A stretch of 64,000 nt of DNA from contig NIVC01000114.1 of assembly GCA_002269645.1 (NCBI GenBank), forward strand, positions 868,001 through 932,000, written 5' to 3'. The notes beneath the pieces are model-generated. The model saw only the letters and a program-made list of their open reading frames with translations, searched no databases and was not told the DNA's origin. This document shows positions 1 to 53,655 of the stretch, in pieces. A program made the translations under genes and the position numbers. Position 1 is the first letter of the stretch, and every line of letters starts with the position of its first letter. Source of the DNA: Macrostomum lignano. Lineage: Eukaryota.

Positions 1-3000
1 CTGAAGCTCTCATTGAATGGCGAAGGCAGCGATGAGTTTCCATACAAATCCTGGTTGCTGCGCTCCACACAGGCGGCACCGAACTGGCACGGATTCAGCG
101 AGCAGTCCGGCACGTCATTGGAGCAGGTCTTTCCCGAGTAGCCGCTGAAGCAGCTGCAGCTGAAGTCTCTGAGCCCGTCAGTGCAGGTGGCGTTGTGGCT
201 GCACGGGTTGCTGGCGCAGTCGTCAATGCGGCTCTGGCAGTTCGGTCCGTTGAAGTCGGTGGCAGAGCAGTCGCAGGTGAACCTCCTGACACCATCGATG
301 CACCTGCCGCCGTGCTTGCACGGACTTGATGCGCAGTCATCGATCTTGGAGCTGCAGATGTCGCCTTGGAAGTCGACGCGAGAGCAGTCGCAGGTGAAAC
401 TGCATTTATTTCAGCATTTTAATGAGAGAAAATACAAAACGTACACAGAAAAATAAAACAAATTTTTCAAAATAAAAAATTGCTTAGTTCGGAATGAATC
501 ATCAACGAGGGAAAATAATAAGTATTAAATTTTTTTCGCATTTTGACACATTTTTTCCTCTACTAGAAGAGAATTAGCAAGTAGGATTGCTAATCAGAAG
601 AAAATAACGCTGTCAACATATCGGACTGTTGGAATATGATTTATCTGTCCATTAAATCTTGTTTTCAGTAGAAAAATTGAAGGAATTTATAACTTCAATA
701 GCATGCATATCGGGGAGGGTAGCAGATATTTTGTGCTTCAAAATTCTAAGTCAGGGTTATCTAAGTATTTTTTGGTTTGTTTTAAACATGATTTAGGTAA
801 CCCCTTCAATTTTAACCTTTCTTCTAAGTAAAATTCTCTAAAGATTTGTTTTAGAAGACTTTTGACTACTGAATCTTGGAAACATTTTGCTTTCAGCGAT
901 AAACAAAAAAAAGAAAGCTCTTTTTCTGATCAAGGGCCTGAAGGAAAGAGAAGCTTAACTCAAAGCAGAATTCGCTGAATGGCTTCACTGCAAAGCCCAG
1001 ATACTAGAATAACTAGATTGGCCACTCAGGCGTATATACTTAGTAAAACAGCCTTCTACTTTCAGTTCGGTAGCAAAGAAGAATGCAAAAGTGCATAAGC
1101 AATTTTTTATACAAATAAAGACAGCTGAAATGACTTTGATAAGCTTAGAAGCCCAAGCTTGCAGGTGTGAACAACTTGCTAATTGGTTCAGCAATAATGT
1201 ACATTAGCCGGTTGGTCCACAGTAATTTACATGGCAGCTTTAGGTTGGAATTCTGAGAAAGGCAATTAAAATTGGGGCGGGGCAGGGGGTTAAAGCTGGT
1301 GGGTAAGAGCTAATAAATAAGCCTTGGCTTTAAAAATACATTGCAATGCTTGTTTAACTTTCTACTGAACAGAAAGTAGCTTACACGCAAATGTGCAGAG
1401 TGGCTAATCTAGTTATTCTAGTATCAGATATCTGTGCTGCAAAGCGACGTCCGCAAGACAACGAAGGGATCAGACTCCCGGTGAATGGTAGGATTCGTTT
1501 GGCGAACGTATTTTTGAGTGACAGAGGCCTCAGCTTCTAATGATCAGGCACTGGGGATGTACTTACGCTCGTAGAAATAGATTTTCCAGTAGTGACGCAA
1601 GAGTTTAAAATTAAGCCAGTCTGTTGATGGGGGTAAAGCCTGGGAAGTTCTGAGTCGCTGGTGTTTGGTAACTTTATCTTCGGTACGAGCGTACGCACCA
1701 GCTCTGCGACTGCCCCACACCCCATACTGCTGTAATTGGCTGACCAGCCCCAAGCTATCTGCAACCAGCTGCGTGCAACCTCCTCTGACCTCCAATTGGC
1801 TATTGATTTTTTTCGCGTAAGTTTGAATTTGCTTGAGCTCGTGGGTCTTGATTCCCTAGGGCTAAAATTCAGTGGACTCAAATATAAGGAGATGTGTGTG
1901 CAACGGGCATTGGCTTTCGCTTCTAACCTGAAAATTAGCTCTCAATCTGCCCGTGTGTCCGCCTTTTTTTATTTCGTGGGTGAACCTACATACTGTACGG
2001 GATAATCGTAAAGACGGACTGATCACATCTCTTCAAGCGATCCCACGTTCAGAATTCGAAATCAGTCTGACTAGGGTGACTCCATCTTTACCCTCTAGAA
2101 TCCGCCCCTGGGTCTTTACCCTCTAGAATCCGCCCCATGGGTCTTTACCCTCTAGAATCCGCCCCATGGGTCTTTACCCTCTAGAATCCGCCCCTGGGTC
2201 TTAACTACATTACAAAATTTGTACTCCCGTTGTTGGCCCACCACCACCTTACTTTCCTTCGCTGCCAGTTTCCCTATATCTATTCTATTCGAAAGTTTAA
2301 ACTAATGTGCTGACTATCTAGAGTTTGTAAACAGCCACTTACACGATCAGTTCGTGTCTCATTACTAATTTGTCATTAAAGTTGGCAATTGAAGAAAGGA
2401 ATTCCCCCATTTTTAGTACAAAAAACTTCTGTGGGAGAAACAATGAAGTTACAATAAAGGTGCGGGCTGGATTATAATATTTAAAATTAAGGAAGCTCGC
2501 GGGCCGCATAGAAAGTCTTTGCAGGCCGGAGGTTGCCGACCCCTGGACTAGGCTGACTGACGCCATCAATTGCTCGTTGCTCTAAAGGTCTTGCAAAGAA
2601 CTGGGAAGCATACGATCGATTAAACGGCCGTGTCACAACACTAGATCTAGGCTTCGATCGCTCACAGTTCATGCGATATAATGAGTAATGACGGCTGCTC
2701 CAGCATGACGAGGCGTGATGGAGTGCTGTTAGCGCAGACCTGGCTCTGGTGGCAGCACGCTCGAAAGCATCAACTAAAATGATAAATGCGACGGCTTCGA
2801 AAAAGGAAACCACAGCCGAAGCCCTTTTTCGAATCCAATGTTCTTTACAGCTGCTTATATCCGCACTCTGGAGCCCGAGCCCAGGCCGAAAGGGTCAAAG
2901 TTTTGATATTTGGCACAGTAATCAAAGATTGCCATCAGGTCACCTTCAGCTTCCTCTGTCCCACAGGGGAGCTGCCCCCAAATGACCCGCACTCAAAAGA

Positions 3001-6000
3001 GTTGTCGATCAGTTGGAAGAGCTGGTTGACACTGATGCTAAAAAACGGATGGCGAGCTGCTAAGTTTAAAACTGAATTACAAGTATTTCTCTACATCTTG
3101 TTTGTTTTCTTGCAACAATAACTTGCTGGATGATAAGAAAGCTCTATTTAACTACGAGCTAAAATTTATTAGATTGTCTACATTACCTAAATGATAGACT
3201 GCACAATCTTTGCAATGCAGTGAAATCAATGGTATCTGAGGCTTTGCACATGCCAATTGCAGCTTCCCAATAGCTCTGAGCCACTCACGTGGAGTTTCCG
3301 TCGCTGCAGACGCCGCCGTTCTGACAGGGCCCTGACAGGCAGTAGTCAGTGTCCACTGAGCAGCTCCTGCCCTCCCAGCCTGTGAAGCAGCTGCAGCTGT
3401 AGTTTTTCACCAGGTCTGTGCACAGGCCGTTGGCGCAGGGCTTGCTGGCGCAGTCATCAATGTTTATCTCACAGTTGGTGCCTGTGAAGTTAAAAAGGAA
3501 TTTCAAAAATAGCAAAGAAATCATCTTTTTTTCGCTCTGCTATACAACACAAATTTTCTAATTGACTATTAAATTTCAAGCAGAGAAATATCAAATGCGC
3601 AGAACCACAAATAATTTCTTTTCGTGTTCCAGCCAGTGCAGAACGGAAAACGGAAACCTGAGCAATGTCACTCAAAACAGCCTCCGCATTGAATGCTTCT
3701 GGCAACCAGAGCACCGTGCGCTAAAAACATGTCTATCATACATGCATAGGCGTGCTAAAGACGAATAGCATTGTCTCAAACTGTAAAAAATTCTGAATGG
3801 AGGCAGAGCGATCAGCATCGATTTCTGGCCTGAAACATACTTCTTCCAAGGCTTGTGCGATGAATGGAAAGAGCTATCGAAACGTGACGATAGCGGGGTG
3901 GCGCCCACGACTCTTAGGTGGGCGCTTCTTTCTTTGAGGTGGGCGACCCTGTCTCTGATTTGGGCACCCCTGTCTCTGAGGTGGGCGCCCATGTCTCTGA
4001 TGTGGGCACCCCTGTCTCTGAGGTGGGCGCTCATGTCTCTGATGTGGGCACCCCTGTCTCTGAGGTGGGCGCCCCTGTCTCTGAGGTGGGCGCCCTGTCT
4101 CTGAGGTGGGCGCCCCTGTCTCTGAGGTGGGCGCCCTGTCTCTGAGGTGGGCGCCCCTGTCTCTGAGGTGGGCACCCCTGTCTCTGAGGTGGGCGCCCCT
4201 GTCTCTGAGGTGGGCGCCCCTGTCTCGGACGTAAGCGCCCCTGTCTCTGAGGTGGGCGCCCTGTCTCTGAGGTGGGCGCCCCTGTCTCTGAGGTGGGCGC
4301 CCTGTCTCTAAGGTGGGCGCCCCTGTCTCTGAGGTGGGCGCCCCTGTCTCTGAGGTGGGCACCCCTGTCTCTGAAGTGGGCGCCCCTGTCTCTGAGGTGG
4401 GCGTGTCTCTGAGGTGGGCACCCCTGTCTCTGAAGTAAGCGCCCCTGTCTCTGAGGTGGGCGTGTCTCTGAGGTGGGCACCCCTGTCTCTGAAGTAAGCG
4501 CCCCTGTCTCTGAGGTGGGCGTGTCTCTGAGGTGGGCACCCCTGTCTCTGAAGTAAGCGCCCCTGTCTCTGAGGTGGGCGCCCCTGTCTCTGAGGTGGGC
4601 GCCCCTGTCTCTGAGGTGGGCGCCCCGGTCTCTGAGGTGGGCGCCCCTTCTCTGAGGTGGCCGTTCCTGTCTCTGAGGTGGGCGCCCCTGTCTCTGAGGT
4701 TGGCGCCCCTGTCTCTGAGGTAGGCGCCCCTGTCTCTGAGGTGGGGGCCCCTGTCTCTGAGGTTGGCGCCCCTGTCTCTGAGGTTGGCGCCACTGTCTCT
4801 GAGGTTGGCGCCCCTGTCTCTGAGGTGGGCGCCCTAGCTTCAAGAAATTCCGAAGCCGGTGTTGCCATTTCTAAGAGGTGGCAAAAGTTGAGCTTTGTCA
4901 TTTAACGATATTGTTTAAATCTTTCCTTCAGTTTTTAAGCAGAAAATGTTTGGTAGGGCACAAATTTTTCCATCCCCCGTCTACCTCCGCCCTCTTTTTG
5001 CAGCCACTGAGTATTTGTAGCAATTCATTAGTTTGGCTTACATCTTTTTTGGCTGTGCATTTAGCCAAAAATGTAAACGAACAAAAGCAGAAAAGCAAAA
5101 GTTAGTAATCGAATAGATTTCTATCATAAATTCAATCTTGCAAGCAATTCTAAGGCGTTTCAATTTCAACTGGCTTTGCCCCACCTGATCACCCACCTGT
5201 GTAGCCGGGAACGCAGCTGCAGTGATACCAGGGGCTCGCGTCTGTGTTGCTGCAGGTGCCTCCGTTTTGGCAGGGATTGGTTCGTGTAGCGCCACCGTCC
5301 GAAGTTGTAGCACAGAAGTTTATTCTAACAGTACAATAAGTACCAACGTACGCCTCAGGACACAGACACGGAGGAGTGCTTGACGTCACAGCACCCGGCC
5401 AGCAAATCCCGCCATTCTTGCAGTCGCCCTCGCTGCAGGCGGCTCGCCTCGTCCGAACCAACGCGTTGGCATCCTCGTCTATGTCTAAAAAGCGTTCTTG
5501 AGTTTAAAATCAGATTGTTAGGATAGTTTTGGGTTATTAAAACATAAACTGTGAGCTCGTCCTAATTCTTTCACTACTTTAGCAAAATAATTAATGATAG
5601 ACGAAGCTCAGAGAGCTCTGTAAAGTCACCGTCATTTTGCTCAACCCTACCTTATAGCCTTGGAGCTGTACTTCAACTAAAGCTCCAATATGTTTTAGAA
5701 TAAATAATGTTTTTATATAAATAAAAATACAGCATATCAACTGATTTATGCTATCATTTTTTCACACTCATTTTAGAAACGCAGGCACTCATTTTAGCAA
5801 CAAGGGCACTCATTTTAGCAACAAGGGCACTCATTTTAGCAACAAGGGCACTCATTTTAGCAACAAGGGCACTCATTTTAGCAATGCAGGCACCCATTTT
5901 AGCAACTCAGGCACTCATTTTAGCCAATGCCGTTCACTTCTCTCAAGTTCGGATGCATTTAGAAAACTGGCATAGCAGACTCACCATCTGGAAGTCTGAC

Positions 6001-7339: not shown

Positions 7340-9607
7340 TAATAACAACAACAGAGTACGCTGTCAGTTCGCAAAAGCAGCGTCAGATGGCTCGCTTCGA
7401 AGCTTGGGCGCGAACAAAGGCCGCACCGCCGGCAGAGTCCGGGGCGCCGGCGTCAGCCAGCAGACAGTCGACGTAGCGCCGAGTCCTCGCCTGTCCCCGC
7501 CGGTAGGGTGCCTGCAACGTAAGTAGCAGCACCTCCTGCACCGGCTCCGGACAGTAGGCCTCGGCGCGGATGACGTGGCCTGCCAGCTGGAGTCGCCGAC
7601 GGCGCAGCAGATCGCTAGGACGGGCCAGGCCGGCGCGATGATAGAGCGCCGTGTTGGTGACTCGCTCGTTGCCGATCTTGAAGGCGGCGCGCAGCAGGCC
7701 AGCGTGCGCCGCGTCGACTTGAGCCTCGAGCGAGTCTGTCAGCGTCCAGGTCTCGGCGTTGTATAACAGGACGGTCTCGATCACCGCCTGGAACAGCGCC
7801 GCCCTCTGGCGGTCCGGTAGGGCCTCGGACTGCAGGACTGACCTTATAGAACGAAAGGCAGCCCAGGCAAGTCCTCGGCGACGCCGCAGATCCTCGCGGA
7901 CGTCGGGAACCAGACCGCCGAGGTAGACGAAATGCTGACATCTTGGAAGCTCACTCGCCTGTCCGTCAGCGCCTCGGCAGAAGATTGCAGCCTCGGTGTC
8001 GTCCGGCACGCATAGCACGACGGTCTTCTGCGTGTTGACCACCAGGCCGACGCTCGCCGCAACGGCAACCAGCCTATCCAGCTGTCGTTGGGCGCCCTCG
8101 ACGGTCGAGGACAGCAGGGCGAGGTCATCGGCGTAGCCAAGCACGCTGAGCCGTCTCTCCGGTTGGCGTCGACCCACGCGTCGCCGCAGCAGGAACCCGT
8201 CGTCGTTGGAAGGCAGAGCAGTCCGTAGCACCCAGTCAAGCACCAGAATAAATAGGAACGGCGCTAGCGTATCTCCCTGGAGCACCCCGGAGGATGTCTC
8301 GAAGAAATCCGATAGGCCGTCCGGTGTTGAGACAGCAGCCGTCGTGCCGTGGTACAGCGCCATGACAGCAGAAATCAGCAGCTCTGGCACGTTGTACGCA
8401 CGGAGCACCTCTGGGAGCGCGTCCCTCACGACCGAGTCGAAGGCCTTCCTGAAATCGACGAAGATTAGGATCAGGGTCAACTGGCGGATGCGCGCCTCCT
8501 CGATGACTCGCCGAAGAGCCAGGATCTGCGTCACTGTGCCGCGATGGGGCCGGAAACCGTTCTGCTCAGGCCGCAGGTACGGGTCCAGCACAGGCTGTAA
8601 CCGCGATAGCAGCATGCGGTTGAACAGCTTTGCGGCGCAGGACTGTAGGCAGATGCCTCGATGCTCCTCGAGCTTGGTGGTGCCCGGCTTCTTTGGAATG
8701 GCGACGATGTGCGCCGTGGTCCATTCGTTTGGCGCCACCTCACCGGAAAGCACGCGGTTCATCACTCTGGCGACCTCAGTGGCCACGCAGTGGATCCGCA
8801 GCGCCTCGGTGGGCACCTCGTCCGGACCAAGCGCTTTGCCGCCCGGTGACTGCCGAGCGAACTTCACAACGTCGGCTGTGCTGACTGGGGCAACGTTGAA
8901 GCTCTCCTCCGCCGGCAACGGCGTCTCCGGCGGCAGCCTCAGATTTTCTGGAAGCGGAGGGGGCGGCGCGTTGACAATGGCGGCGAAGAACTCGCGCAGC
9001 TCGTTCCTGCGCTCATCCGGAGTGTCGCCTGCCAGGTTGAGCGCGATGCGCCGCTTTCGCCCCGTTAGAGTGTTGATGACGGACCAGGCCACGCGCCCTC
9101 TGGCATCGGGCCCTGCGGCAGAGACGGCTTGGATGGCGTCATCGACAGCGGACTGCTGCCGCTGCAGGTAGACAGCCGCCAGAGCCTCCTCCGCCTCGCG
9201 AGTTTGCCGCTCACTCAGACGGAGCCTCTCCAGATCTTCCCTCGCTTCGTCGATCGCGGGGTCGTCCTGCCAGACCGGCTGCCCGCGCTGGGCCGGTCGC
9301 ATCAGCGGGACTGCTTGCTCCGCAGCGGCTCGAACTGCAGCGCTCACCTCCGCGTACTCGGCTCCTCCACGCTTGTCGCCCAGCGCAGTGACAAAGGCAC
9401 CGGCAAAGCGACGTCGCGTCTCGGCGTCCCTGAGCGCGCGGTAGTAGCGCCGCGGTGGCCGCTTTGGCGGACGGTAGAGCGGGTCCCGAAGCCGAAGGTC
9501 GCAGATGAGCAGCCGATGGTCGAACCGCAGAGCCAGCGGCGTAATGGTGCGGCAGTTGGTGACGCGGCGGCGCTCACGAAAGCGCACAAGCACGTGGTCG
9601 AGCTGTG
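7340..9607 (-). mobile_element. 5'-truncated non-LTR retrotransposon (APE-type, RTE-like)
   Basis: Intact RT ORF; 3' tail (TGT)n/TTA at 7340-7352; junction repeat ccga at 7336-7339 and 9608-9611; empty paralogous site at ~18259-18300. Confidence 0.9.
7383..9607 (-). CDS. Non-LTR ORF2 remnant: end of APE endonuclease plus full RT
   Basis: QLDHVLV..NCR..DHRLL (endonuclease C-terminus), GPDEVP, IPKK, QNGFR, FVDFRKAFDSV, GVLQGDTLAPFLF, YADD. No stops. Confidence 0.9.
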
Positions 9608-9994
9608 CCGAGTAAAACACAGGCATTCACATTCCACAGCTGTCAAAACATTATAACTATAATTTTTCAGTAGGCATATCGAAGAAATCATGAGATTGAT
9701 TTCCTTACAATCTTCAACCTACATAATCTAAGAAGGACTTCTTGACCGAGCTACTTTTTTGTACGAGAGACTGTAAAATACGATTCAAATCCAATAGAGG
9801 CAAACACGAACGCTTTAAAAGTGCAAAAAGTACATAATATTCGCATTATAAAAACCATCAGCTACTCAAAGAAGCCAGCACTGGAGTAAAAACAGACAAA
9901 AAACTCATCAATGTAACACCAAATGTTTCAACGCGACTTTTTTAATAAATATAAGACGTCTTCCGCAGAAAATCAGAAAAAAACTGTTCCATCC

Positions 9995-12900
9995 TCAGTG
10001 AAAGCCTTGATTAGCGTAAATGGCAGGTGCGAAATCCGAGTTCTCGTTTGCGTATTCGCAACCTGCGGCTTCAGCAATGGAATCCAGCTGGACTGGTGGA
10101 AGCGGCTGGTTCTGCCGATTCTTCTGAGGGGGGGGGGGGCAAGGAAAAGAAGATAGTGGAATATACTAGATACATGATACTGATATTCAATCATCATCCT
10201 TATCAACACTAAACATGAAAGGTGTCGATTAATTTCTGTTCAGAGTTAGAATTTTTAAGGTCTAGTTTTCTCGTTAATAATAATATGCCTTTTTGGTTTC
10301 AAAAGTTATATCAAATGTCAAGGGACGCGAATTGATATCTCACCACTGAAGCTTTGCAGAGTTCTTCAGTAGCTGAAGCATACTGATGCGCTGAGTCAGC
10401 ATCCTGCACCTTGGCATTCTGCGTGGGCACACAATATTTTGTATATTATTGAGAATTAAAACCCACATCTCAAAATGTGTATTTAAAATTTTCCACAGCG
10501 AAGCTTACACGTGATATTTCACGAGTTGCTGAAACTGTTGGTTCCGCATACTTGGCTGGCTTAGTGCGCGATAAATAGCCCTGAACAATGGCAAAACGAT
10601 TATTACAGTCACAGTTAATGCGTCATTGTCGAATATAGCACAATATTATAACAATCTCTGCACTTACAAAACGGATTAAAAGACCCACCACGGCGACAGC
10701 GAGCCCAGCTGTGACGACGCCAGTAAGTGCGCCGACAACTGCGCCTACAACTACTGAAGAGCTTCGGGATTCCTCAGGATCGGATGCATGCCTTGATTCT
10801 AAAAATATATAATTCATATTCAGTAAAACAACGCACTCGATAATATAAAATCAACTTACACAAACCGTATATTGAGACGACACTGCAAAACGTCTCACCA
10901 TAAGAATCAATACAGACGAATCCGGGAGCCAGATCATAGCTGAATGACCCATTGAAAGGCCAAGGCAGAAATCTCAACTTGTAGTTCGCTTGGTCGCTTC
11001 TCTCCAAACAGACTTCACCGCTCTTGCACGGATTCGGGCTGCAGTCGGGGTGATCAACCGAGCAGTTCACGCCCGAGTAGCCATTGTGGCATTTGCACCT
11101 GCGGAGTTGCCATAGACAATATGCACTACGGAACATGGCAGCAATCTGAATCACAAAAACTTCTCACTCATAGGAATTGTAGAAAACGTCCACGCATGTA
11201 GCTCCGTTTCTGCAAGGTGAAAACGTTTCGCACACCTCAGAAACAACTCCCAGTCGTACACCAGACGAATCGCTGGCTGCAATGGCCTGAGGAAGGCTTG
11301 CCAGCAAGCTGGGAGAGACAGGACGCAACATCAGCGGCTTCTCGCCGTTCAGTTTGGGGCCAGAAATGATGCCGCGGAAAGCTGTGTAGTTCGCTGGTAG
11401 AACTGAGGCCACTGCACTCGATAGGGTCGGCGCTGACCTCTTTGATCTACGGCTGCCGTGAGCTACAGGCAACAATGAGGAGTCTGGGGCTGCCCGAAGA
11501 CCGCTGAAGCCGCCGATGATGAGCTGGCCTGACAGCTGCGGCAGCGGACTCGCACTGCTCAGCGATGCCGACCTGACTGAAGATGACACTGACAGCGACA
11601 GTGAGCGACCCGATATCGACACGGAGATCTTCACTGAGACGAAGCTTCCATTGGCCACCGAGTCTGGGGACGTCAGCGCTGCGATGTGGGAGCCGTTGCT
11701 GTGCAGTAACTGGGCGGACAGACGGCCAGAGTGATCGATCTGAATAAATTTAAACAAATACTGACTTTACCAGATTTAACCGGATCTAGAAAAAAGCATT
11801 AAGGACACTGACCGTAGCGAGCAGTCTTGGAGTGGTCGCCGAGTCGCTCGGGTCGCCCAGCAGCAGCAGAAACGCTCCTCGAGACAAAGTCACCAGCCTC
11901 AGCTCAATCGTCCACGAGTCTCCGCCAGACACACTTGACGCATTTGGCAGAGAAGCGAAACTCGCAGACGATACAAGTCCGCTTATGCCGAACGAGTACT
12001 GTGGAAGCAGCACGGAGCAGTTTTTGCCTCCGAACTCAGCGGGGCAGCCGGTGCAGGCATAATTCGCTACCAGGTCCTTGCAGACGGCTCCGTTCTGACA
12101 CGGCTGTCCGAACCGCTCGCACTCGTTGGTGTCGACTGAACAGGTCGGGCCCTCGTAGCCGGGCAGGCAGTCGCAGGTGAAGCTCCTGACACCGTCGGTG
12201 CACCTGCCGCCGTGCTGGCACGGGCTCGACGCGCAGTCATCGATCCTGGAGCTGCAGGTGGCGCCTTGAAAGTCGACGCGAGAGCAGTCGCAGGTAAACC
12301 TGATTTTGGATTAAAAAAGGCAGTAATTTTTGAAACCGTAATGCTTGTGACGATGAAGTAAGAATCTAAAAAATTGCCTGTTTCATTGTTTGATAAACAC
12401 CTGTTTTAACTTTGCTTGACTATCAAGGGAATATAGTTGGTTTACAGTGTCTCTCTTTCCTAGGATTTTCGTAGATATTCCTTACGGAATTTTACAATCG
12501 TTTATGTTAAACGCATCAGTGAAAAAGCAAAAACAAGGGGCACTGAGACTTCACAATTTTACAATCAAGACGGGAGAAAAGGATTGAGTCTACAGAATTA
12601 TCTAATCGGATAATTCTGTTCAGGATATAATTATGCGTTACAACGCCGCCTTTCGAAACCGTTCTCAAAGGAGCCCTTCAGATGTTTTTTGAATCGAAAT
12701 CAGTCTCAAAAGAGTTTGCAAACAAGTTTATACCCTGACCTATCGATGTCACTTTAGTTGCTACCAAAACATTTCTTACAGCGTCAGACCCAAAAAAGTG
12801 ATTTAGTGGCAGGGGCTCGGGGAATCCGGATGCATTGGGAAGACAGCAAACTCGATATCCTAAATATTTCTAAAAACTGAAGTTGCTAGCTGACAAGAAA

Positions 12901-43600: not shown

Positions 43601-46473
43601 AAAGCTACCAGGCTAGAGTCCGCTACCTGAAACCTTCCAGGCTAGAGTCTATCCACTTCCTGAAACTCTCCAGAGAGGGATCGCGGTGCGGTCAGCGGCA
43701 CCACCGGATCTCCCTGTTCGAAACCGCAGCAATAACTGCCCGTGGTGGCCAGGGCCAGGGCCTAGAGCCCCCTGCAGATGATTCAAGTCAAGAAGGAGAA
43801 CTCACGTGCCGTTGCCATCAATGCACCTGCCGCCATTGAGGCAGGCGTCTGTTGGACAGTCATTGTGGTTGATGCTGCAGTTCCTGCCCTCCCAGCCTGT
43901 GAAGCAGCTGCAGTTGTAGTCAGTCGCCAAGTCTGAGCACAGGCCGTTAGCGCAGGGCTTGCTGGCGCAGTCATCAATGTTGATCTCGCAGTTGGTGCCT
44001 GTGTTAAAAAAACTGGAAATGTCAAAACTAACAAAGAAGTCAAGCTTTCTTGCTCGCTCTGCTACCCATGATATTTAGCATACATTTCAGGCATCAGTGA
44101 AACCTAAAAATAAGGGAACCTTAGTGCGGAAGCGCTAAAGCATGCGCATTATGCATATGAGCGTAGACTAAGGCAGAGAGATGCGACTGAGAGTTTACGA
44201 AGCCTCTTGGCGTTCATTAGATCGATACAACGATTGTTACATAACTGGGTATAAAAGATAGAGATAGGGGTGAGTGAAAAGCATGTACACTGTACAATAG
44301 CAACCCCCAACCTCGCCCTAGCGACTGGCGCATAAAAGTACACTTGCAACTCACTACATGAGTACTCGTACCAGAGCCTTGTCTCAAGCGTCAAAGTCAC
44401 TAGCAACCCCCAACCTCGCCCTAGCGACTGGCGCATAAAAGTACACTTGCAACTCACTACATGAGTACTCGTACCAGAGCCTTGTCTCAAGCGTCAAAGT
44501 CACTAGCAACCCCCAACCTCGCCCTAGCGACTGGCGCATAAAAGTACACTTGCAACTCACTACATGAGTACTCGTACCAGAGCCTTGTCTCAAGCGTCAA
44601 AGTCACTAGCAACCCCCAACCTCGCCCTAGCGACTGGTGCATAAAAGTACACTTGCAACTCACTACATGAGTACTAGAGCTTGTCTCAAGCGTCAAAGTC
44701 ACTCAAAGCAGCCACCGTATTGAATGCTTCTAACAACCAAAACAATATACCCTAAACCATGTCCATCCTGCATACATGCGTACTAGATAGCTGGATAGCA
44801 TTGTCTCAAGCTTAGCAAATCTAAAGATAATTTTGGTAGCTGCAGTGGCGTTCACAGTAATTATAATTGAGGTGGCTACACTATTGGCTACCTTAAGGGG
44901 CGCCAATATTTAATTCGATTTCGAGTACAATCTGAGTACAACTCGCGCACACAACCGTCCTAAAATGAAGTCGAAACTTAAAACTTTCTGAATGGTGACA
45001 GAGCGAGCATCATATCGGGTCCTGGCCAGGAGCAGAGTTCTACCAAGGCTTGTGCGATGAACGGAAAGAGCAATCCGATAGTGGGTTGGCGCCTCGGACA
45101 CTGAGGTGGGCGCCCCTGTCTGTGAGGTGGATGCCCCTGTCTGTGAGGTGGGCGCCCCTGTCTGTGAGGTGGATGCCCCTGTCTGTGATGTGGGTGCCCC
45201 TGTCTCTGAGGTGGGTGCCCCTGTCTCTGAGGTGGGTGCCCCTGTCTGTGAGGTGGGTGCCCCTGTCTCTGAGGTGGGTGCCCCTGTCACTGAGGTGGGC
45301 GCCCCTGTCTGTGAGGTGGATGCCCCTGTCACTGAGGTGGGTGCCCCTGTCTCTGAGGTGGGTGCCCCTGTCTCTGAGGTGGATGCCCCTGTCTGTGAGG
45401 TGGCCTAGCCATGCATGAAACTCCAAGGACGGTAGAAAACTTATCCAAGATGTGGCAAAATTTAGGCTCTTGTCTTTCAACAAGATTGTTTAACGCTTTC
45501 ATTCAGTTTTTAAGGTAAGAAGTTGGGGTGGGGTGCAAATATTTTGGCCTGTTGTTGGGTGGGGGGAAGCTACCCTCCCCTTATTAGCCCTCTCAGTGAA
45601 TGTCATTGACTATTTGTAGTAAGCTATTAGTTTGCCTCAAATCTTATTCGGCTGTGAATTTAGCTAAAATTTTAAAGGAGCAAAACATAAAATCTGTATT
45701 TGATATTATTTCTTCTATTTCTTCAAATAGATTTTTACTACCGTTTCAATTTCAACTGGCTTTGCCCCACCTGGTCACCCACCTGTGTAGCCAGGAGCGC
45801 AGCTGCAGTGATACCAGGGGCTTGTGTCTGTGTTGCTGCAGGTGCCTCCGTTTTGGCAGGGACTGCTTGAATTGGTGCTGCTATCCGAAGTTGAAGAACA
45901 GTAGTTTATTAAATGAGTGGTGCAATAAGGACCAGTGTACGGCTCAAGACACAGACACGGAGTGTCTGACGTCACAGGACCGGGCCAGCAAATGCCGCCA
46001 TTCTTGCAGTCGCCCTCGCTGCAGGCGGCTCGCCTCGTCCGAACCAACGTGTTGGCGTCCTTGTCAAACTCTACAAAAAAATTTTGGGTTGTTATAAAGT
46101 ACATATGCGGGTCCTTCTCATGGGCTCTCGGGGTATTAAAATTGGGATAAAAAGTCAATTATGTCAATTGGATGAGGTCAACCTAAAGTTTTTTTCTTCA
46201 AATGAGCAACTTGGATGATGAGATGTCTCAGCGGCTGTAGTTGTCGATCGCAGTCTGGAGTTTCACCTCAGGTTTATTTCGGTACTTTAATTGGCATTCG
46301 TATTATAAAAAAGCAAGCTTTACCGAAGAAAACATTAGCAAGCGTAAAAATCACGTCAACTCACCAGCTGATTGTAAATCCTTTGAAACGGACTTGGAAG
46401 AGACCAGAGATGCCAGGTTTAACATCAAGATTATTTCCAAAGTCAGTAGCAGCTGTGCTTTGCATGAAAACAT
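34666..46473 (-). CDS. Crumbs-like EGF/laminin-G type I membrane protein, array copy 4 (one LamG deleted)
   Basis: Exons 46473-46365 (signal), 46070-45783, 43998-43806, 42285-41963, 41897-41726, 41637-41516, 41437-40697 (LamG GPGFKGCLDNLRLNG, EGF, TM start), 37256-37084, 36997-36935, 36318-36238, 34740-34666. The small tail exons are the least certain. Confidence 0.72.
34802..36120. repeat. 21-bp minisatellite tgtgagatggtggctgggttt (~60 units), last intron of copy 4
   Basis: Strict 21-bp period with higher-order blocks; gives the ISQNPAT/MVAGFCE ORF artefacts. Confidence 0.97.
36554..36777. mobile_element. 224-bp fold-back MITE with TA target duplication (Tc1/mariner-like)
   Basis: ~80-bp near-perfect inverted arms (caccttttcacgttcaa..cagactgggg / ccccagtctg..ttgaacgtgaaaaggtg) flanked by TA; not seen in the paralogous copy 5 intron. 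Confidence 0.8.
37478..37556 (-). mobile_element. SINE body/3' fragment
   Basis: Minus strand cccagctgtaaaatgggtaccagcattagctgggg..gtggcgacccc matches 54298-54375. Confidence 0.6.
37870..40325 (+). mobile_element. Decayed Ty3/Gypsy element in an intron of copy 4
   Basis: Interrupted RT (YGLASGQAVFQ..FIDDIMV), RNase H (ECDASSY..AEKNYAQIDKKALA), integrase (LHEGHPG..CRRC..YVDF); PPT aggaaagggagagg followed by TGTAGT at 40267; several stops and frameshifts. Confidence 0.88.
40466..40535 (-). mobile_element. SINE tRNA-like head (fragment)
   Basis: Minus strand ggggttgtagcctagtgattagagcgtcggac..ggttcgatcc matches the head at 54173. Confidence 0.65.
44298..44703. repeat. 103-bp tandem repeat, about 4 units
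   Basis: tagcaacccccaacctcgccc recurs at 44298, 44401, 44504 and 44607. Confidence 0.92.
45102..45402. repeat. Same minisatellite family, copy 4 intron
   Basis: Variants gaggtgggtgcccctgtctct and gaggtggatgcccctgtctgt. Confidence 0.93.
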
Positions 46474-47198
46474 TGCGGATCAACGGTTATGTTTGATTGT
46501 GGTTTCTATTGAAGCTGCAATCAGTCTTGATCGACTTGGAGAAATGTTCTCGAGGCATGAAGTATTAGTGCGATTTTTTATTTAGGATGCGACAAAGACC
46601 CAATTCCCTCTAATTTCGAAGTTTTGAACTGATTAGAAAACATGAATAACTAAAAACATTGACGGCTTTAAAAAATTAAAACTGTCGCCTTTACTAACTA
46701 ATAATTATTTATTTATCGTGCAAATTACGAGCCACTAAAGACGTACGCTCCATTTAAAATAAAATCTACAAAATACATGTAATTGAATTTGTTTTAATGC
46801 TTGGATAAATTGTATCGACGCTAAAACAGACGCTTAATATGATTTACCGATCATGTCATCATAAGTAGGTCTTTACTGATTACTGCCAAAACACAGCGCA
46901 CTGCTGGCTAACACTGTATTTTAGAAAGTCAGGGGGTCTAGAGTAACATTGTGCAATAAACAAACTAATCAGTGCGTTCAGTGACTCATGACATGCAATA
47001 GAATAAATTTCACTTGTTTGTTTTACTCTGAGCGTTTAAAACTACAGAAAGTAACAGCAGTGAAGTAATCGCAACCAGCTGGTAAGAAATGCAAAAAAAT
47101 AACAAACAAAAATACATTTAACAGATAATACATGTAGAGTGAATTGCTAATTTATAAGTAATGTATGAAGACAGTGTTTTTGAAAATTGCGCAAAGTC

Positions 47199-50100
47199 TC
47201 ATGAAATCGGAGCATCATAGGTATTATCAGGTTGCTGGCCATCATGAAATGCGACATCGCCAGGTGCGACAGCTTCATCAGGTACCTAATTGAGTATTTT
47301 AGTTTGGGTATGCAAAATGTTCAGCTGGTTGTATAAATTTCAGGCTTCTGTGAGATGATGGATGCATTCTGTGAGATGATGGATGGGATCTGTGAGATTG
47401 TGGATGGATTCTGTGAGATGGCGGATAGATTCTGTGAGATCGGGGATCGATTCTGTGAGATGATGGATGAATTCTGTGAGATGATGAATGAATTCTGTGA
47501 GATGATGGATGAACTCTGTGAGATGGGGGGTCAATTCTGTGAGATGGGGATCGATTCTGTGAGATGATGGATGAATTCTGTGAGATAGGGGATCGATTCT
47601 GTGAGATGATGGATAAATTCTGTGAGATGATGGATGAATTCTGTGAGATGGTATATGGATTCTGTGTTTTCTTGAGTAAATCTATAAGTACATATATCCT
47701 AATAATTTAAGTGCAATGCACCTGCTCCAACGATTGATCCTCGGACAGATCGATGCCCTCATCGGTCGGAGTGGGTGGCAGGGCTCGACCAGCATTGGCT
47801 CCCTGGTAAAACATTAAATTTCCGTTTTTAAAAAATAATCATGTTTTATTGGTTCTTGACGTTAACATTGATTAAAACAAACTTTTGTTCATTACTTTTC
47901 AATCAAATCGGCAATGAATAGGTTTTTTATTTGTTCTATTTTTTTCGTGATCTACAAGATTTGATTGTTCTTTAGAACGAAAAACTTTAAAAAATGATTT
48001 GTAAACTTTTAATTTTAGATAAATTTACGAGTAGATAAATAGAACTTAAAGATCTTGTATATAGGTAAATATAAATTCCATACATGCAAGAGAGCTTGAC
48101 TAAAGTGACCATTGGCACATTTTAACAAAAAAGTAAACTTGTTGATTTAAAATCCAGAACACAATTTCACACTTACTAAACAAACGTAGCTAAGAGAACC
48201 GGGCAAACCAGTATCCTGACTACCGTCCGCCTCGAGTGGATTTTCGTAAGTGTACACCTAAATTTGAAGAAAAAATATGCCAAGTTAGTTTTCTACTGCA
48301 ACTACACATCGCGTGAAGTTATTAGTCTTATTACACAATTAAAGAAACTTACCGCGCTAGAGTCTCTTTGATCAGCGACAAGGTAGCCACTGCTAGGACG
48401 CAGCTCTACATTTGCGTCTGCATGAGGCACCGGCTGACTTCCATTGGATTCGCTGTCAGAGGCAGCGCTTTGAGAAGTTGGACGACAATTTAGCTTCTTT
48501 TTTAAATAAACTGCTGATGATGCTGGAATGAAGTCATCGATAAATGGGTGTCTTATTTGGGGCATGTTGGGGTTCTGTGGGATGATGGATGGGTTCTGTC
48601 AGATGGTGGATGGATTCTGTGAGATGGTGGATGGGTTCTGTCAGATGGTGGATGGGTTCTGTGAGATGATTGATGGATTCTGTCAGATGATGGATAGATC
48701 CTGTGAGATGATGGATGGATTCTGTGAGATGGTGGATGGGTTCTGTGAGATGGTGGATGGGTTCTGTGAGATGGTGGATGGGTTCTGTGAGATGGTGGAT
48801 GGGTTCTGTGAGATGGTGGATGGGTTCTGTGAGATAGTGGATGGGTTCTGTGAGATGGTGGATGAGTTCTGTGAGATGATGGATTGGGTCTTTGAAATAA
48901 TAGATAGGTTCGGTGACATGGTGAATGATGTGATGATAATGAGTTTTTTCAGCACATGTATCTTTTCTACCCCTCACCGATAGCAATCAAGATGACAACA
49001 ACAAGCGCGGCGCCAACCGCAACAACAATAGCTGTGGGAAAATCAGCAGGTGACGCATCCTTGACGGAACACTCTTTGCCAAGAAATCCAGCAGGACAGT
49101 CGCATTTGAAGTCGTTCCAAAGAGCCACACATTGGCCACCATTTAAGCAGACATTGGAAGGAGTTTTCTGGCAAACCACGTCGCCATGACAACCAGTCAG
49201 GATTGAAGACGCAGCCATCCAATTAAATCCCGAATAACCGCTTGGCAGGGAGCGATTGACGAGTGGCACCAAGTAACCGTTGAGTCGCAAGTTGTCAAGG
49301 CAACCCTTGAATCCGGGGCCCCCAGCTGTAACCGTAGCAGAAGAATCCAGGATCAAACCAGCTGGAATCGGCGTTGTGTCTGCCAACACCCGGAAATCGC
49401 TAGCATTGGTCGACACACCAGCGGTCAAAAAGCCACCCTCAGCACAACTAATACTGAAGTTAAATGGTAAACCTGTTGCTATGGAAACCGCCACCAATAC
49501 TGTCCGGTCGTTAAGAGAGACTTTAAAGTGTCCGGACTCGCAACCAACTGACAGCTGATGACTGCCGCTGAGCACGGTCAGTAGATGGCAGTCTGACTGA
49601 CGAGTGCGGGCCCAGCCGGTAACCGCAGTCAGAGTTTCGTTGAGACCAGTCACCGATAATGCAATCTGGCTGCTTGATGGCGATATCAGAGAGCTGCCAA
49701 ATGTTGCAGCTGTGCGGCCTGAGTTTCAGAGGAAATTTAGCCACATGTCAAAATAGAAATACAAGAGAGTGCTACTAACAGTAGTCTATAACTCACACTC
49801 AAATCCGCCAGAGTCCAATTGTACGCACTTCGTTCCGTTAGGGCAGTATTGGTCAGCAAAATAACAATGGTCTTTCATTGTACAATTGGGTCCGAACCAT
49901 CCCTCAGTGCAGTTGCACCTGTGAAAACAGTTACACGGCAAGAAGATTTTAATTTATCGCCAACTGGTCAAGAAACAGCTATCTACAACTCACGTATAGG
50001 AATTGTAGAAAGCATTAGTGCAAACAGCTCCGTTCTTGCAAGGCAAGAATGTCTGGCAAGCATTCTCCGTAGATACGCCAGTGAGCACTGATGAGTAGCT

Positions 50101-53100
50101 AGCTGAGACAGCCTCTGGCAAGCTGTCGATCAAGCTGGAGGTTACAGGACCGAGAATCAGTGGCCGGTCACCGTTCAGTCTCGCAGATCCAACGATGCCA
50201 CGAAACGCGGTGATGTTGTCTGGCAACAGAGATGCGACGCCGCTAGGAAGACTCGGCGCTGATCTCTTTGACCGAGAGACACCAGCCGAAGAATCAACAA
50301 GCGACGGAGCCGGGGCTGCCCGAAGACCGCTGAAGCCGCCGATGATGAGCTGGCCTGACAGCTGCGGCAGCGGACTCGCACTGCTCAGCGATGCCGACCT
50401 GACTGAAGATGACACTGACAGCGACAGCGAGCGACCCGATATCGACACGGAGATCTTCACGGACACGAAGCTGCCGGTGGCCACCGAGTCTGAGGACGTC
50501 AGCGCTGCGATGTGGGAGCCGTTGCCGTGCAGTAACTGGGCGGACAGACGGCCAGAATGATCGATCTGAAAAGATTGAAACAAATACTGAAAAAATCTGA
50601 AAATACTTTACAATCAAAGACATCAAAAAAGGACACTGACCGTAGCGAGCAGTCTCGGAGTGGTCGCCGAGTCGCTCGGGTCGCCCAGCAGAAGCAGAAA
50701 CGCACCTCGAGACAAAGTCACCAGCCTCAGCTCAATCGTCCACGAGTTATTAGCAGTGAAATTCGAGTCAGCAGGAATTAGGGACAAAAAACTAGCTGAT
50801 GAAGCGTTGCCGTCCAGTCCAAACGCAAAATCGGGAAGCTGGACCGAACAGTTGCGTCCCGTAAAGCTCCGCTCCAGGCTGCACACGCACCGGTAGTCGT
50901 GCAGGGGAGTCGGGAACTCCTGCAAGAGAATCGGCTGGCACGTGGCGCCGTTCTGGCACCAGTTGGAGTCGCAGCCGGTGAGGCTCACCGAGCACTTCCT
51001 GCCGCCCAGTCCGGCAGGGCAGTTCGCGCACTCGAAATCCGCCAGCCGGTCGATGCAGGTCGCTCTGCTGGGACACGGCGGGGGCAGCGACCGACACTCG
51101 TCGATCTCTCGGCTGCAGTTTGAGCCCTCGTAGCCGGGCAGGCAGTGGCAGGTGAATGAGGCCAGGCCGTCCGTGCAGCTCGACGCGTGAACGCACACGC
51201 TGCGGTTGGTGGCCGGGTCCAGACAGTCGTTCGGGTTGATCTCGCAGTGGGTTCCATAGGCACCTGCACGAGAACTCGTAGATGTATTTTACGTGTAAAA
51301 TGCTTCTAGAACAATTCCAGATAAGTAAAGCAAATCAAAACAGTACCAGATGGGCACCAGCAGATGTAGCCGGCAGCCATCGAATAGTTAAAGGTGCCGT
51401 TGAACGGTGGCGGGTAACCAGCCAGTCCGTAGTACTTCTGGTTGCTGATCTCCAGACAACGACCCTCGTTTTTACACAGGTGCGGCGTGCAGTCCTCGTA
51501 GTCAAGGGAGCAGTCTGGGCCGGAGAATCCATCGTAGCAGTTGCAGGTGTAATTTCTGAACCCGTCGATGCAGGCCGCCCCGTTCTGGCACCGATTCGGC
51601 ATGCAGTTGTCAATGCGGTTCTGGCAATTTGCGCCGTAAAAGTCCGTCATGGAACAGTCGCAGGTGTAACTTCTCAAGCCGTCGGTGCATTTGCCACCAT
51701 TTTGACACGGGTTCGGTTGGCAATCGTTGATCCACAAGTTGCAATTTGTACCTTCGTAATCTGTGTCTTGACAATAGCACGTGTACCTGAGTAGGAGTAG
51801 TTATTACATGCAATTTAATCCAATATACTAAAAATGAAAATCTTGCTTGTTTGTTTGTACGCAATCGATTAGAGAAAAAATGGCTGGACCGATTTTCATG
51901 AGATTTGCACTGTTCGATCAGAAATTTGTACCTTCGTAATCTGTGTCTTGACAATAGCACGTGTACCTGAGTAGGAGTAGTTATTACATGCAATTTAATA
52001 CGCTACTGATAGTCTATTGTACCAGCGTTGGTGTTGAATCAATGTCAGATGTTTTACCATCAACTTCTCAATTAAAAAAAGAAGCAGCCTACTCCTACTT
52101 GCATGGTAAGTACATGCTTAACTCCTCTTATGAACTAACTACATTGTTACAAGCAGGGGCGTCGCCACCGGGGGGGGGGACATGCCCCCCCCCAGTAAAA
52201 TCTATGGGGGGACATGACAATGCTTTGTCCCCCCAACCCACCTTGTGACTCGTTGTGGAAAGCAAAAATTTTGTTTCAGGATGCTTAAATATAGCACCTG
52301 GGGCGCTAAAATGAGTAACTGCAGCGCTAAAAAATAGCGCTGACAATCAGCAGGGGCGTCGCCATGGATTTTATGGTGGGGGGGGACAAAGCCAACAATT
52401 ATACATGTACATGTACATGACTAAGTTCCTACATGTACATTATTTTCAGAATTGGTATTGTCAGTACTCAATTTAGCGCCGCAGCCACTCATTTTAGCGC
52501 CGCAGATACTCATTTTAGCGCCACAGGCACTCATTTTAGCGTCACAGGCACTCATTTTAGCGCTGCAGGCACTCATTTTAGCGCTGCAGGCACTCATTTT
52601 AGCACCACAACACTCATTTTAGCGCCTCAGGCACTCATTTTGGCGCCACAACACTCATTTTAGCGCCACAGCACTCATTTTAGCGCCGCAGGCACTCATT
52701 TTAGCGCCACAGCACTCATTTTAGCGCCGCAGGCACTCATTTTGGCATGACCCCCCTGTTGGCGACGCCCCTGCTGAAAATTACACAACTTTCAAAATAA
52801 TGTTACAGTAGGAATTTAGTCATGTATATGTAAATGTAAAACTCTGCTTTTTCCCCTTCATAAAATCTATGGCGACGCCCCTGGTTAAATGCTTGATTAT
52901 TAAAGTTGTGTTCAGTTGAGCTTATTTGTGTTACAGATTTATTTGATCGCGTATACATGAGTAGATCGATGTACAAGCATGTTTTAGTTTGAATTGTTTT
53001 ATTAATTAGTTATACATGTACTCTATAGATGTAAGTGTAGTTAAGAAGAAACACAACTTCAAAAGTTATTAAAACACAAAAAACCAATATTTTAGCTGTG

Positions 53101-53655
53101 TGAACAAACATCATTGGTGACTTTTGATTGATTATAATGTAATTTTCTTCGTTATAACAAAAACTTTACATGTATATTTTAGTGTATGTTGTTCTTGAAT
53201 GCACACATTTTTTGCCACCTGGGCATGTTTAGAAGCGATGGTTAGAGACTCTAATCTATCGATTGTTTAGTTGCCAAGGCATCAGCAGCAAAACTTCAAT
53301 CTTGCTTGAATTAACATTTTTGCACACATTTTTGCCACCTAAGCATGTTTAGAAGCGATGGTTAGAGACTCTAATCTATCGATTGTTTACTTGCCAAGGC
53401 ATTAGCAGCAAAACTTCAATCTTGCTTGTTAACACTGTGCTCAAGCTGTAGGACTCACGTCGTCTCTCCACTGCTACACAAGCCGCCGTTTTGACACGGC
53501 TTCGATTGGCAATAGTCCACGCTAGATGCGGCTCGCCGCGATGCAGTCAGCTGCAGTTCTAAGCCCTGGCAACTGCCCAGCAACCAGCAGCAGTGGAAAT
53601 AGTAAACAAATAATAGACTTTTGACAACCATAACTATCTGTAGACATTGTGCCAT
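47199..53655 (-). CDS. Crumbs-like EGF/laminin-G type I membrane protein, array copy 5 (complete model, two LamG)
   Basis: Exons 53655-53459 (signal MAQCLQIVMVVKSLLFVYYFHCCWLLGSCQG + EGF start), 51786-51347, 51263-50641, 50565-49994, 49918-49797, 49718-48978 (LamG, EGF, TM AIVVAVGAALVVVILIAI), 48522-48353, 48257-48177, 47802-47722, 47285-47199. Phases all compatible. Confidence 0.78.
47345..47665. repeat. Related 21-bp minisatellite (ttctgtgagatgatggatgaa), last intron of copy 5
   Basis: About 15 units at the position homologous to 34802-36120. Confidence 0.9.
48575..48885. repeat. Related 21-bp minisatellite (ttctgtgagatggtggatggg), post-TM intron of copy 5
   Basis: About 15 tandem units. 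Confidence 0.9.
52154..52883. mobile_element. Two CAGGGGCGTCGCCA-terminated MITE-like units enclosing a 21-bp tandem repeat
   Basis: Left ends at 52154 and 52351, right ends (tggcgacgcccctg) at 52773 and 52883. Confidence 0.65.
52468..52745. repeat. 21-bp tandem repeat cactcattttagcgccgcagg
   Basis: About 13 units inside the MITE-like element. Confidence 0.9.
53195..53428. repeat. ~120-bp tandem duplication
   Basis: gcacacatttttgccacct..cttcaatcttgcttg occurs twice. Confidence 0.85.

Follow-up and report, generated by a model that had tools for sequence, protein, structure and literature searches.

A probable lineage-specific tandem expansion of crumbs genes with replaced cytoplasmic tails in Macrostomum lignano

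We analysed a stretch of 64,000 nucleotides (nt) from the genome of the flatworm Macrostomum lignano, below called the window (contig NIVC01000114.1:868001-932000 of the Mlig_3_7 assembly, GCA_002269645.1, which comes from one inbred line only). The window is eukaryotic DNA, with a G+C content of 47-48% and no N, and it carries five head-to-tail genes on the minus strand, named here A to E, which encode type I membrane proteins with EGF repeats, laminin G (LamG) domains and the insert-bearing EGF (insert-EGF) of Crumbs. The best-supported interpretation of these sequences is a lineage-specific tandem expansion of the crumbs gene (crb), in which the ectodomains were kept and the cytoplasmic tails replaced. 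Gene models were built by mapping database proteins and our own exon pieces onto the DNA, with junctions fixed by GT/AG and frame continuity. The 51 exons across genes A-E contain neither stops nor frameshifts, every splice site is canonical GT-AG, and all 24 EGF-like matches found by a regular-expression scan of the window lie on the minus strand. Thus, the five minus-strand, head-to-tail genes proposed in the initial annotation were confirmed. Their positions in the window, with lengths in amino acids (aa), and those of their insert-EGF motifs are as follows.

53655-47707, minus strand: gene A, 8 exons (53655-53459, 51786-51347, 51263-50641, 50565-49994, 49918-49797, 49718-48978, 48522-48353, 47802-47707), 986 aa, an open model
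46473-36187, minus strand: gene B, a hybrid, 9 exons (46473-46365, 46070-45783, 43998-43806, 42285-41963, 41897-41726, 41637-41516, 41437-40697, 37256-37084, 36318-36187), 750 aa
33915-18662, minus strand: gene C, BOX15_Mlig025742g2 (P0009), 12 exons, 903 aa; our own spliced model equals P0009 residue for residue
17529-9995, minus strand: gene D, 11 exons homologous to C exons 2-12, all open (17529-17242, 15045-14853, 14185-13958, 13413-13186, 12299-11813, 11739-11168, 11098-10899, 10798-10668, 10580-10509, 10418-10344, 10123-9995), plus a candidate exon 1 at 18524-18431
6147 to beyond the left edge, minus strand: gene E, P0008, 1099 aa from the Met at 6078; exons 6147-5986, 5485-5195, 3485-3288 and 398-1 in the window, the last ~3.3 kb and six exons outside it
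51360-51458, minus strand: insert-EGF motif of A
41976-42074, minus strand: insert-EGF motif of B
21829-21927, minus strand: insert-EGF motif of C
10912-11010, minus strand: insert-EGF motif of D (the copy in E crosses the window edge)

The five proteins differ mainly in which modules they carry. Gene A encodes a signal peptide, about eight EGFs including the insert-EGF, LamG2, an EGF, an EGF-like repeat, LamG3, a further EGF, a transmembrane segment (TM) and a Ser/acidic tail of 79 aa. In C, the signal peptide is followed by an RTRR site, EGFs with three two-EGF cassette exons, LamG2, an EGF, a truncated insert-EGF, the TM and an 88-aa tail, and from the RTRR site onward D has an identical layout. 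The part of E to the left of the window adds EGFs, LamG1, an EGF, LamG2, the insert-EGF, a TM and a 43-aa tail ending in YATADRI. LamG content is thus LamG2 and LamG3 in A, LamG3 in B, LamG2 in C and D, and LamG1 and LamG2 in E; within the window, a LamG and a TM segment were seen in A-D. The 228-nt two-EGF cassette exon is present once in B and E and three times in C and D. B has lost LamG2 and retains half an EGF at the deletion junction; the UniProt entry P0001 represents a B variant with one additional EGF cassette. Pfam recognised the EGFs strongly and Laminin_G weakly. For A, AlphaFold2 was run on an alignment of 70 sequences and gave a model with a mean predicted local distance difference test (pLDDT) score of 72. 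It contains two confident beta-sandwiches, at residues ~355-580 (LamG2) and ~656-830 (LamG3), with block means mostly 77-94 and LamG2 and LamG3 at 80-94. Foldseek matched these sandwiches to the CELSR1 ectodomain, to paired laminin LG domains and to the neurexin LNS-EGF-LNS unit; for the N-terminal part it returned Notch EGFs.

The signal peptides and EGF arrays reported earlier were confirmed for A, B, C and E, each of which has an N-terminal hydrophobic leader and a single C-terminal TM, but the signal peptide was not confirmed for D. No homologue of the signal-peptide exon 1 of C or E was found upstream of D, and D lacks the 1.1-kb block that in E holds exon 1. The only candidate D leader is the open reading frame (ORF) at 18524-18431 (MVFIMRIL..., MVFIMRILCTFCTFKALVFA…), which has a phase-compatible GTAAAA donor and lies ~140 bp past the C stop. 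This ORF, which at both sites has the form MVFIMRILCTFCTFKA(L/F)VFASIGFESYFTVS, recurs after the D stop (9852-9760, minus strand, GTAAAA donor, ~140 bp downstream). The ORF found after the C and D stops is a possible leader exon of the next gene, which would hint at tightly packed or polycistronic transcription.

The fullest paralogue that we found, P0003 (1404 aa, on another contig), has the colinear three-LamG layout EGF/LamG1/EGF/LamG2/EGF/LamG3/EGF known from Crumbs, of which the window genes carry subsets. It aligned colinearly with pigeon Crb2 over 1326 residues at 30% identity (E 3e-159), an alignment that takes in the EGFs, the insert-EGF (CLERSNQALY..FSYALAAGFVCLC versus CFERSNPAYY..FSYSQAAGFLCWC) and each of the three LamG domains. 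A protein search with the best-resolved window gene gave M. lignano proteins at 95-100% identity. Outside Macrostomum, the full-length matches were vertebrate CRB1/CRB2, with 92% query coverage and 25-31% identity, and 89 of the 120 best matches end in the C-terminal ERLI. A 70-sequence alignment of Crumbs proteins has the insert-EGF motif (C.ERS..Y..FSY..AGF.C.C), which A-E carry too, as its majority consensus. The strict form of the motif was found in 34 of the 89 ERLI-ending matches and in one of the 17 other matches from outside M. lignano, namely P0019, which is annotated as crumbs-like. The LamG3-EGF part of A is 56% identical to that of P0126, an M. lignano protein with a canonical Crumbs tail. 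On the other hand, the LamG domains alone led to M. lignano only. A HMMER search with the LamG3 of A against 1.84 billion representative proteins gave seven matches at E<=1e-3, all from M. lignano, including the canonical-tailed P0121 and no foreign Crumbs, and a search of a word-indexed database with the LamG region likewise returned M. lignano proteins and no foreign relatives. As the LamG domains are by themselves too diverged, the link to Crumbs rests on colinearity, on the EGF part and on the canonical M. lignano gene as a bridge. We consider it probable, at roughly 0.8, that the ectodomains of A-E are Crumbs by descent and that the cluster arose from local duplication of crb. The earlier description of the genes as Crumbs-derived is borne out by the Crb2 colinearity, the ERLI-ending matches and the LamG3 identity, and their description as lineage-specific by the LamG-region searches.

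Three unrelated kinds of cytoplasmic tail are present among A-E. The tails of A (79 aa) and B (89 aa) are homologous, rich in Ser and acidic residues, and contain a single Tyr each; those of C and D have 88 aa and four Tyr, two of them in YxN motifs; and the 43-aa tail of E is a shortened form of that of P0075. They terminate in …VHCT, …ILLG, …QGFH (C and D) and …ADRI. None of the five contains GTYxPS (searched as G[TQ]Y.PS), ERLI, NPxY, or an immunoreceptor tyrosine-based inhibitory or activation motif (ITIM, ITAM), and ITIM-like matches were seen only in the off-window relatives P0075, P0084 and P0007. A six-frame ORF scan of the window gave no GTYxPS, ERLI-stop or EVFF-stop, and a lenient tblastn search with the canonical tail exons returned noise only. 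The possibility that a relic canonical or EVFF tail exon survives in the window was rejected, none having been found by ORF scan or tblastn. The first tail exons of A and B resemble the canonical tail exon weakly (26-31% identity over 38-42 aa, E 8-12, with K…NRR shared in B), which is a hint of relationship at best. A concatenated-tail search for tail donors returned P0084 and P0075 only; it missed even identical family members and was thus uninformative. A fourth tail, …GVRVGHL…PVPQEVFF, is found in the off-window proteins P0003, P0007 and P0010 (loci L004, L005, L006, L008, L009). As it loosely parallels the Crumbs tail (…GARLEM…VPPEERLI) and ends hydrophobic-x-hydrophobic, it may be a diverged PDZ ligand.

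The initial annotation had left the true crb orthologue to be sought elsewhere. It was found, with both the GTY and the ERLI motif, in the same extended cluster. P0121/P0126 (BOX15_Mlig013136g1, partial) has the Crumbs tail …RRKESGTYGPSKAE…PPPEERLI, ending …NRRKESGTYGPSKAESRSNAHAQAQPPVRPPPEERLI, with the motif GTYGPS. A second canonical-tailed type, P0129 (Mlig011649g2), ends …RNRRSETGQYRPSKEE…RPPTEERLI and reads …GQYRPS…PTEERLI. A six-frame motif scan and tblastn placed a Mlig013136-type crb copy on NIVC01000114.1 itself, at ~687.4-691.6 kb, about 176 kb to the left of the window. The window is part of a Crumbs-family gene cluster of at least 230 kb in M. lignano, which from right to left comprises A-E, a 334-aa EGF gene model, P0075 (801-804 kb), a P0007-like gene, P0010 (697-709 kb) and, on the opposite strand, the canonical crb. 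The array is therefore not bounded by the window, as at least three further family genes and the canonical crb follow further left on the same contig. The canonical crb copy stands tail-to-tail with P0010, and the identical arrangement was found on two further contigs. M. lignano is a neopolyploid for which three subgenomes have been described (PMC10733133), and the Mlig_3_7 assembly is redundant, with duplicated blocks (PMC5730564); the occurrence of the crb/P0010 arrangement on three contigs fits both. Related tandem sets are present on NIVC01001300.1 (P0003, a P0010-like gene and P0007) and on NIVC01000038.1.

The canonical gene also bears on how the tails may have been exchanged. Its exon boundaries …FYNSYS|CNC…, …GGFEC|RAAATF… and, within the TM, …GLVIIISV|VAVLLFKY… are all three common to A, where the last one reads …VILIAI|ASSAVYLKK…. 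As A and the canonical crb share the intra-TM intron, everything from the middle of the TM onward forms a separate 3' exon module, which accounts for how one tail could be exchanged for another. That the tails were re-engineered, as supposed in the initial annotation, is supported both by the lack of Crumbs motifs in the window tails and ORFs and by this shared boundary. Crumbs is defined as a polarity determinant by its FERM- and PDZ-binding motifs (PMC3564977, PMC2064851). Because the tail-exon module was replaced, the window proteins would be unable to use these polarity-defining motifs.

The window genes are mosaics, which agrees with the earlier suggestion that the family is recombining. 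The window was compared with itself with minisatellites masked, and tandem repeats were detected with Tandem Repeats Finder (TRF). The repeats, core islands and mobile elements of the window are as follows.

15668-16879: 21-bp minisatellite in intron 2 of D (TRF)
3900-4834, 31098-31787 and 45101-45403: 21-bp minisatellites of the identical family in intron 2 of E, C and B, respectively (TRF)
34801-36151: second 21-bp minisatellite family, downstream of the B stop
37304-37356, 47346-47666 and 48570-48927: relatives of the second family, in a B intron, after the A stop, and in the A intron between TM and tail exons
50745-50647 and 50565-50326, minus strand: LamG2 core island of A
22834-22736 and 22656-22417, minus strand: LamG2 core island of C
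11917-11819 and 11739-11500, minus strand: LamG2 core island of D
23305-27827, plus strand: full-length Ty3/gypsy long terminal repeat (LTR) retrotransposon in C intron 5, antisense to C (RVT_1, RNase H, integrase)
7383-9626, minus strand: reverse-transcriptase ORF of long interspersed element (LINE) type between D and E (RVT_1, E 8e-29)

D is a recent tandem duplicate of C: the two are 95-96% identical over ~6 kb including introns, with a synonymous divergence (dS) of 0.044. At its 5' end (16901-17714), D matches E at 94% and C at 87% identity, the remainder being C-like, and the switch between the two lies inside the 21-bp minisatellite of intron 2. As the breakpoint of the D mosaic falls within it, the intron-2 minisatellite suggests itself as a recombination substrate. 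We also considered these 21-bp "GAPTSET" repeats as mucin-like coding repeats and rejected the idea, as they are intronic (intron 2) in the RNA-based C model and drift among three open frames. B, in turn, is chimeric. The region of its promoter and exon 1 resembles C (33709-34746 versus 46267-47291 at 85%), with an identical exon 1 protein, and exons 2-4 are of the C/D/E type (86-94%). The gene becomes A-like at 93-94% with exon 5 (40697-41669 versus 48984-49948 at 94%), and so is its tail region (36778-37293 versus 48016-48559 at 81%); this A-type half encodes an EGF-like repeat, LamG3, an EGF, the TM and the tail. In A and B, the second minisatellite family lies on either side of the tail exons, in the intron that leads into the first of them and directly past the stop. 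B intron 2 further contains a 103-bp tandem repeat (44298-44703, four copies, 97% matches).

A pattern of another kind is seen in LamG2. A core of 339 nt is 92-100% identical among nine paralogues on four contigs (loci L001, L003, L004, L006 and L007 included), with a dS of 0.02-0.22 (A-C 0.053), while the rest of the domain is saturated (dS 1.9 for A versus C) and the 75-94-bp intron that splits the core is only 63-82% alike. This island looks like the product of repeated short-tract gene conversion, possibly templated by cDNA, or of an unusual synonymous constraint. The two mobile elements break no exon. The LTRs of the gypsy element, 221 bp each (23305-23525 and 27607-27827), are 100% identical and enclose an uninterrupted 1276-aa gag-pol ORF. 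The element is not in D, C intron 5 equalling D intron 5 plus 4523 bp, and by its sequence the insertion is very recent.

We estimated the ratio of nonsynonymous to synonymous substitution rates (dN/dS) pairwise by the Nei-Gojobori method (NG86) on short segments, which gives crude values confounded by gene conversion:

C-D, overall: 0.50
C-D, EGF cassettes: 0.26
C-D, tail: 0.85
A-B, LamG3-EGF: 0.19 (dS 0.13)
A-B, tail: 0.48
first cassette exon, B-E: 0.25-0.38 (C-D 0.00)
LamG2 C-terminal part, A-C: 0.19
insert-EGF: 0.11-0.49
N-terminal EGF1-2 exon: 0.58-0.82; D-E 1.28

The sole value above 1, for D-E, comes from nine nonsynonymous and two synonymous codon changes. As the pairwise ratio is below 1 almost everywhere, the family appears to be mainly under purifying selection, with the weakest constraint at the membrane-distal tip. 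The initial annotation had called the locus diversifying. That term is not supported, as pairwise dN/dS is 0.1-0.8 nearly throughout and no hypervariable ectodomain module was found; what varies is domain content, and by these comparisons the diversification is architectural rather than a matter of point substitution.

Compared with known systems, the family resembles Drosophila Crb and vertebrate CRB1/CRB2 in being type I membrane proteins with an insert-bearing EGF, and resembles Crumbs in general in the colinear ectodomain of its fullest paralogue. The canonical M. lignano crb has exon boundaries in common with gene A and is 56% identical to it in LamG3. The window genes differ from Crumbs in that their tails are 43-89 aa long instead of ~37 aa and lack the GTY FERM-binding and ERLI PDZ-binding motifs, and A-D have lost one to three LamG domains. 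In this family, moreover, only one EGF follows LamG3, a furin-type site is found in an inserted LamG2 loop, and there are at least ten linked paralogues as opposed to one to three genes. Crumbs tails in Caenorhabditis elegans stay Crumbs-like. The C. elegans genes crb-1, eat-20 and crb-3 (PMC4359734) offer a parallel, being a lineage-specific group of a few paralogues whose ectodomains differ in length, but they number only three and are not described as a tandem array. Another parallel is CRB3-CLPI, the alternative-tail isoform of mammalian Crumbs3, in which exchange of the C-terminal exon costs the protein its ERLI and directs it to different partners (PMC2064851). However, CRB3-CLPI arises by alternative splicing of one gene and has almost no ectodomain, whereas the window holds separate genes with fixed tails and large ectodomains.

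Several observations weigh against our interpretation. Only C and E have transcript-based GenBank models, and some copies may be silent, as B and D were not called and no NCBI protein match was returned for A, which is represented by UniProt predictions only (P0002, which fuses A with B). The signal-peptide exon of D is no more than a candidate, and in B the deletion has left a broken EGF at the junction. The C-D ratio of 0.50, and 0.85 in the tails, is compatible with relaxed constraint. Finally, searching with the LamG domains by themselves gave no library-wide significant match to a Crumbs protein from outside Macrostomum. It needs to be mentioned that the Mlig_3_7 GenBank gene set was made from genome-guided RNA-seq assemblies, with transcripts overlapping repeats discarded (PMC5730564). 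As the pipeline dropped such transcripts, a missing gene model is weak evidence of silence.

One alternative is that these are mostly dead duplicates in a repeat-rich neopolyploid genome, with one or two functional copies and the rest decaying or silent. The uncalled genes speak for it, as do the loss from D of the block carrying E exon 1, the loss of LamG2 from B and its half EGF, the C-D ratios, the young gypsy element in C and the LINE between D and E, and the known redundancy of the assembly (PMC5730564; PMC10733133). On the other hand, all 51 exons are open with canonical splice sites, the regions shared by A and B are clearly under purifying selection (dN/dS 0.19 at dS 0.13), the mobile elements are intronic or intergenic, and an absent model means little given the repeat filter; we thus regard the alternative as unlikely. 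A related concern is that C and D, or more of the copies, are haplotypes or subgenome copies wrongly placed in tandem, as their 95-96% identity including introns is within the range of Mlig_3_7 duplicated blocks (PMC5730564). Yet the window contains no N, a 4.5-kb retrotransposon is present in C and missing from D, the 5' end of D resembles E and not C, the C-to-D and D-to-E junctions share a common downstream block as in true tandem repeats, A, B and E are much too unlike C and D to be alleles, and similar tandem layouts exist on two other contigs. Such an artefact is very improbable. Both alternatives are weakened by the intact ORFs, the apparent purifying selection and the junction structure, less so for B and D. 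We give as little credence to A-E being parts of one giant transcript, whether a long gene or a polycistron, as in the UniProt fusions P0001 and P0002. Gene predictors did merge A and B, trans-splicing resolves the multi-gene precursors that make up about 7% of the transcriptional units in M. lignano (PMC5730564), and the candidate D exon 1 begins only ~140 bp after the C stop. But each unit ends with a TM, a tail and an in-frame stop, after which the next one opens with a signal peptide of its own; C and E are two distinct genes in the RNA-based models; and a fusion would put EGF and LamG domains after a cytoplasmic tail, P0002 even requiring a donor just before the A stop.

The initial annotation had likened the locus to clustered allorecognition or immune receptor loci and proposed it as a candidate diversifying recognition locus. 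On this reading, to which mate recognition may be added as a role, fast-evolving clustered receptors would give individual- or non-self-specific binding. Some features do fit: clustered surface receptors variable in copy number, with shuffled ectodomain modules and varied tails; tyrosine motifs, YxN in C and D, and YxxI and ITIM-like in the off-window P0075 and P0084; the highest dN/dS in the N-terminal EGF1-2 exon; and P0001, which hints at a B variant with an extra EGF cassette. To our knowledge, M. lignano does not form colonies and has no known allorecognition phenotype. Nearly every segment has a dN/dS below 1, the lone higher value reflecting nine versus two codon changes; no hypervariable domain was found, the LamG2 core being homogenised across copies instead; the five window tails contain no ITIM or ITAM; and our literature search tied these genes to no phenotype. 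Given these ratios and the lack of both ITIM/ITAM and a hypervariable domain, the allorecognition or immune reading is unsupported, only clustering and modularity fit it, and we think it most improbable. Clustered protocadherins, Hydractinia Alr and Botryllus fuhc share the tandem layout, the modular ectodomains and unequal crossing-over or gene conversion with our locus, but the window belongs to another domain family and has no variable/constant-exon splicing scheme, demonstrated polymorphism or positive selection.

We thus return to expansion of crb as the preferred interpretation. Repeated local duplication of crb, followed by exon-level remodelling, would have given rise to the M. lignano cluster. 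Ectodomain modules would have been lost, duplicated and exchanged, and the tail-exon module replaced as 3' exons, the reshuffling proceeding by unequal crossing-over and gene conversion, probably aided by phase-compatible two-EGF cassettes and intronic minisatellites. What is new here is the canonical crb nearby, the exchange of tails as 3' exons and the recombination patchwork. In flies and fish, Crumbs is known to make homophilic Crb-Crb contacts. The proteins encoded by A-E may keep such Crumbs-type extracellular binding while being uncoupled from the Pals1/PATJ and Moesin scaffold. From this uncoupling it would follow that they serve as receptors in adhesion or recognition, or else modulate canonical Crumbs, and that their partners inside the cell are different ones (e.g., SH2 adaptors for the C/D tail). 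This functional proposal, of Crumbs-type binding with new intracellular partners, is tentative, and we hold it to be doubtful rather than probable.

Proteolytic maturation is suggested at two predicted furin-type sites, RTRR|A just before EGF1 in B-E and R-x-K/R-R|S in a LamG2 loop. The latter is conserved throughout the ten family sequences that were aligned, the canonical-tailed P0126 among them, and lies at residues 518-521 of A (window ~50270), 609-612 of C, 604-607 of D and 857-860 of E; the loop is variable in length, has low pLDDT and is predicted to be disordered. The proteins would thus probably be processed by furin at both sites.

A more far-reaching version would make the genes a combinatorial receptor family, with a homogenised LamG2 binding core, variable EGF/LamG scaffolds and at least five outputs (the canonical GTY/ERLI, GVRVGHL…EVFF, Ser/acidic, YxN and YxxI tails), serving as a code for cell-cell, sperm-egg or partner recognition. 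Crb-Crb-type contacts might then be read differently in each cell type, and new specificities might arise through minisatellite-guided recombination. We regard this as a speculation with a small chance of being right.

The function of the large Crumbs ectodomain is still poorly understood, as mechanistic work has mostly concerned the 37-residue tail. M. lignano offers a natural series in one genetically tractable flatworm (transgenesis, RNA interference), in which one ectodomain comes with canonical, EVFF and three unrelated tails. As LamG1, LamG2 or LamG3 is deleted in turn, ectodomain function might be separable from polarity scaffolding. The locus would also illustrate how new receptor architectures arise soon after polyploidisation, through tandem duplication, cassette exons, minisatellites within introns and a tail-exon module. 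If the copies are silent, it would be merely another duplicated family in a redundant genome. Our searches for publications on Crumbs in Macrostomum or in flatworms, and for the Mlig gene identifiers, found nothing.

The right flank of the window contains two genes outside the Crumbs family.

55032-56075, minus strand: short-chain dehydrogenase ORF (adh_short, E 1.5e-32)
58981-60003, minus strand: GT4 glycosyltransferase ORF (Glycos_transf_1, E 1e-33)

Long minisatellites with units of 30, 33 and 44 bp lie between the right-flank genes (56165-57413, 58310-58823 and 60969-61697), and the AT-rich right end of the window carries a 325-bp direct repeat (62284-62608 and 62828-63152) with 97.8% identity between its two copies.

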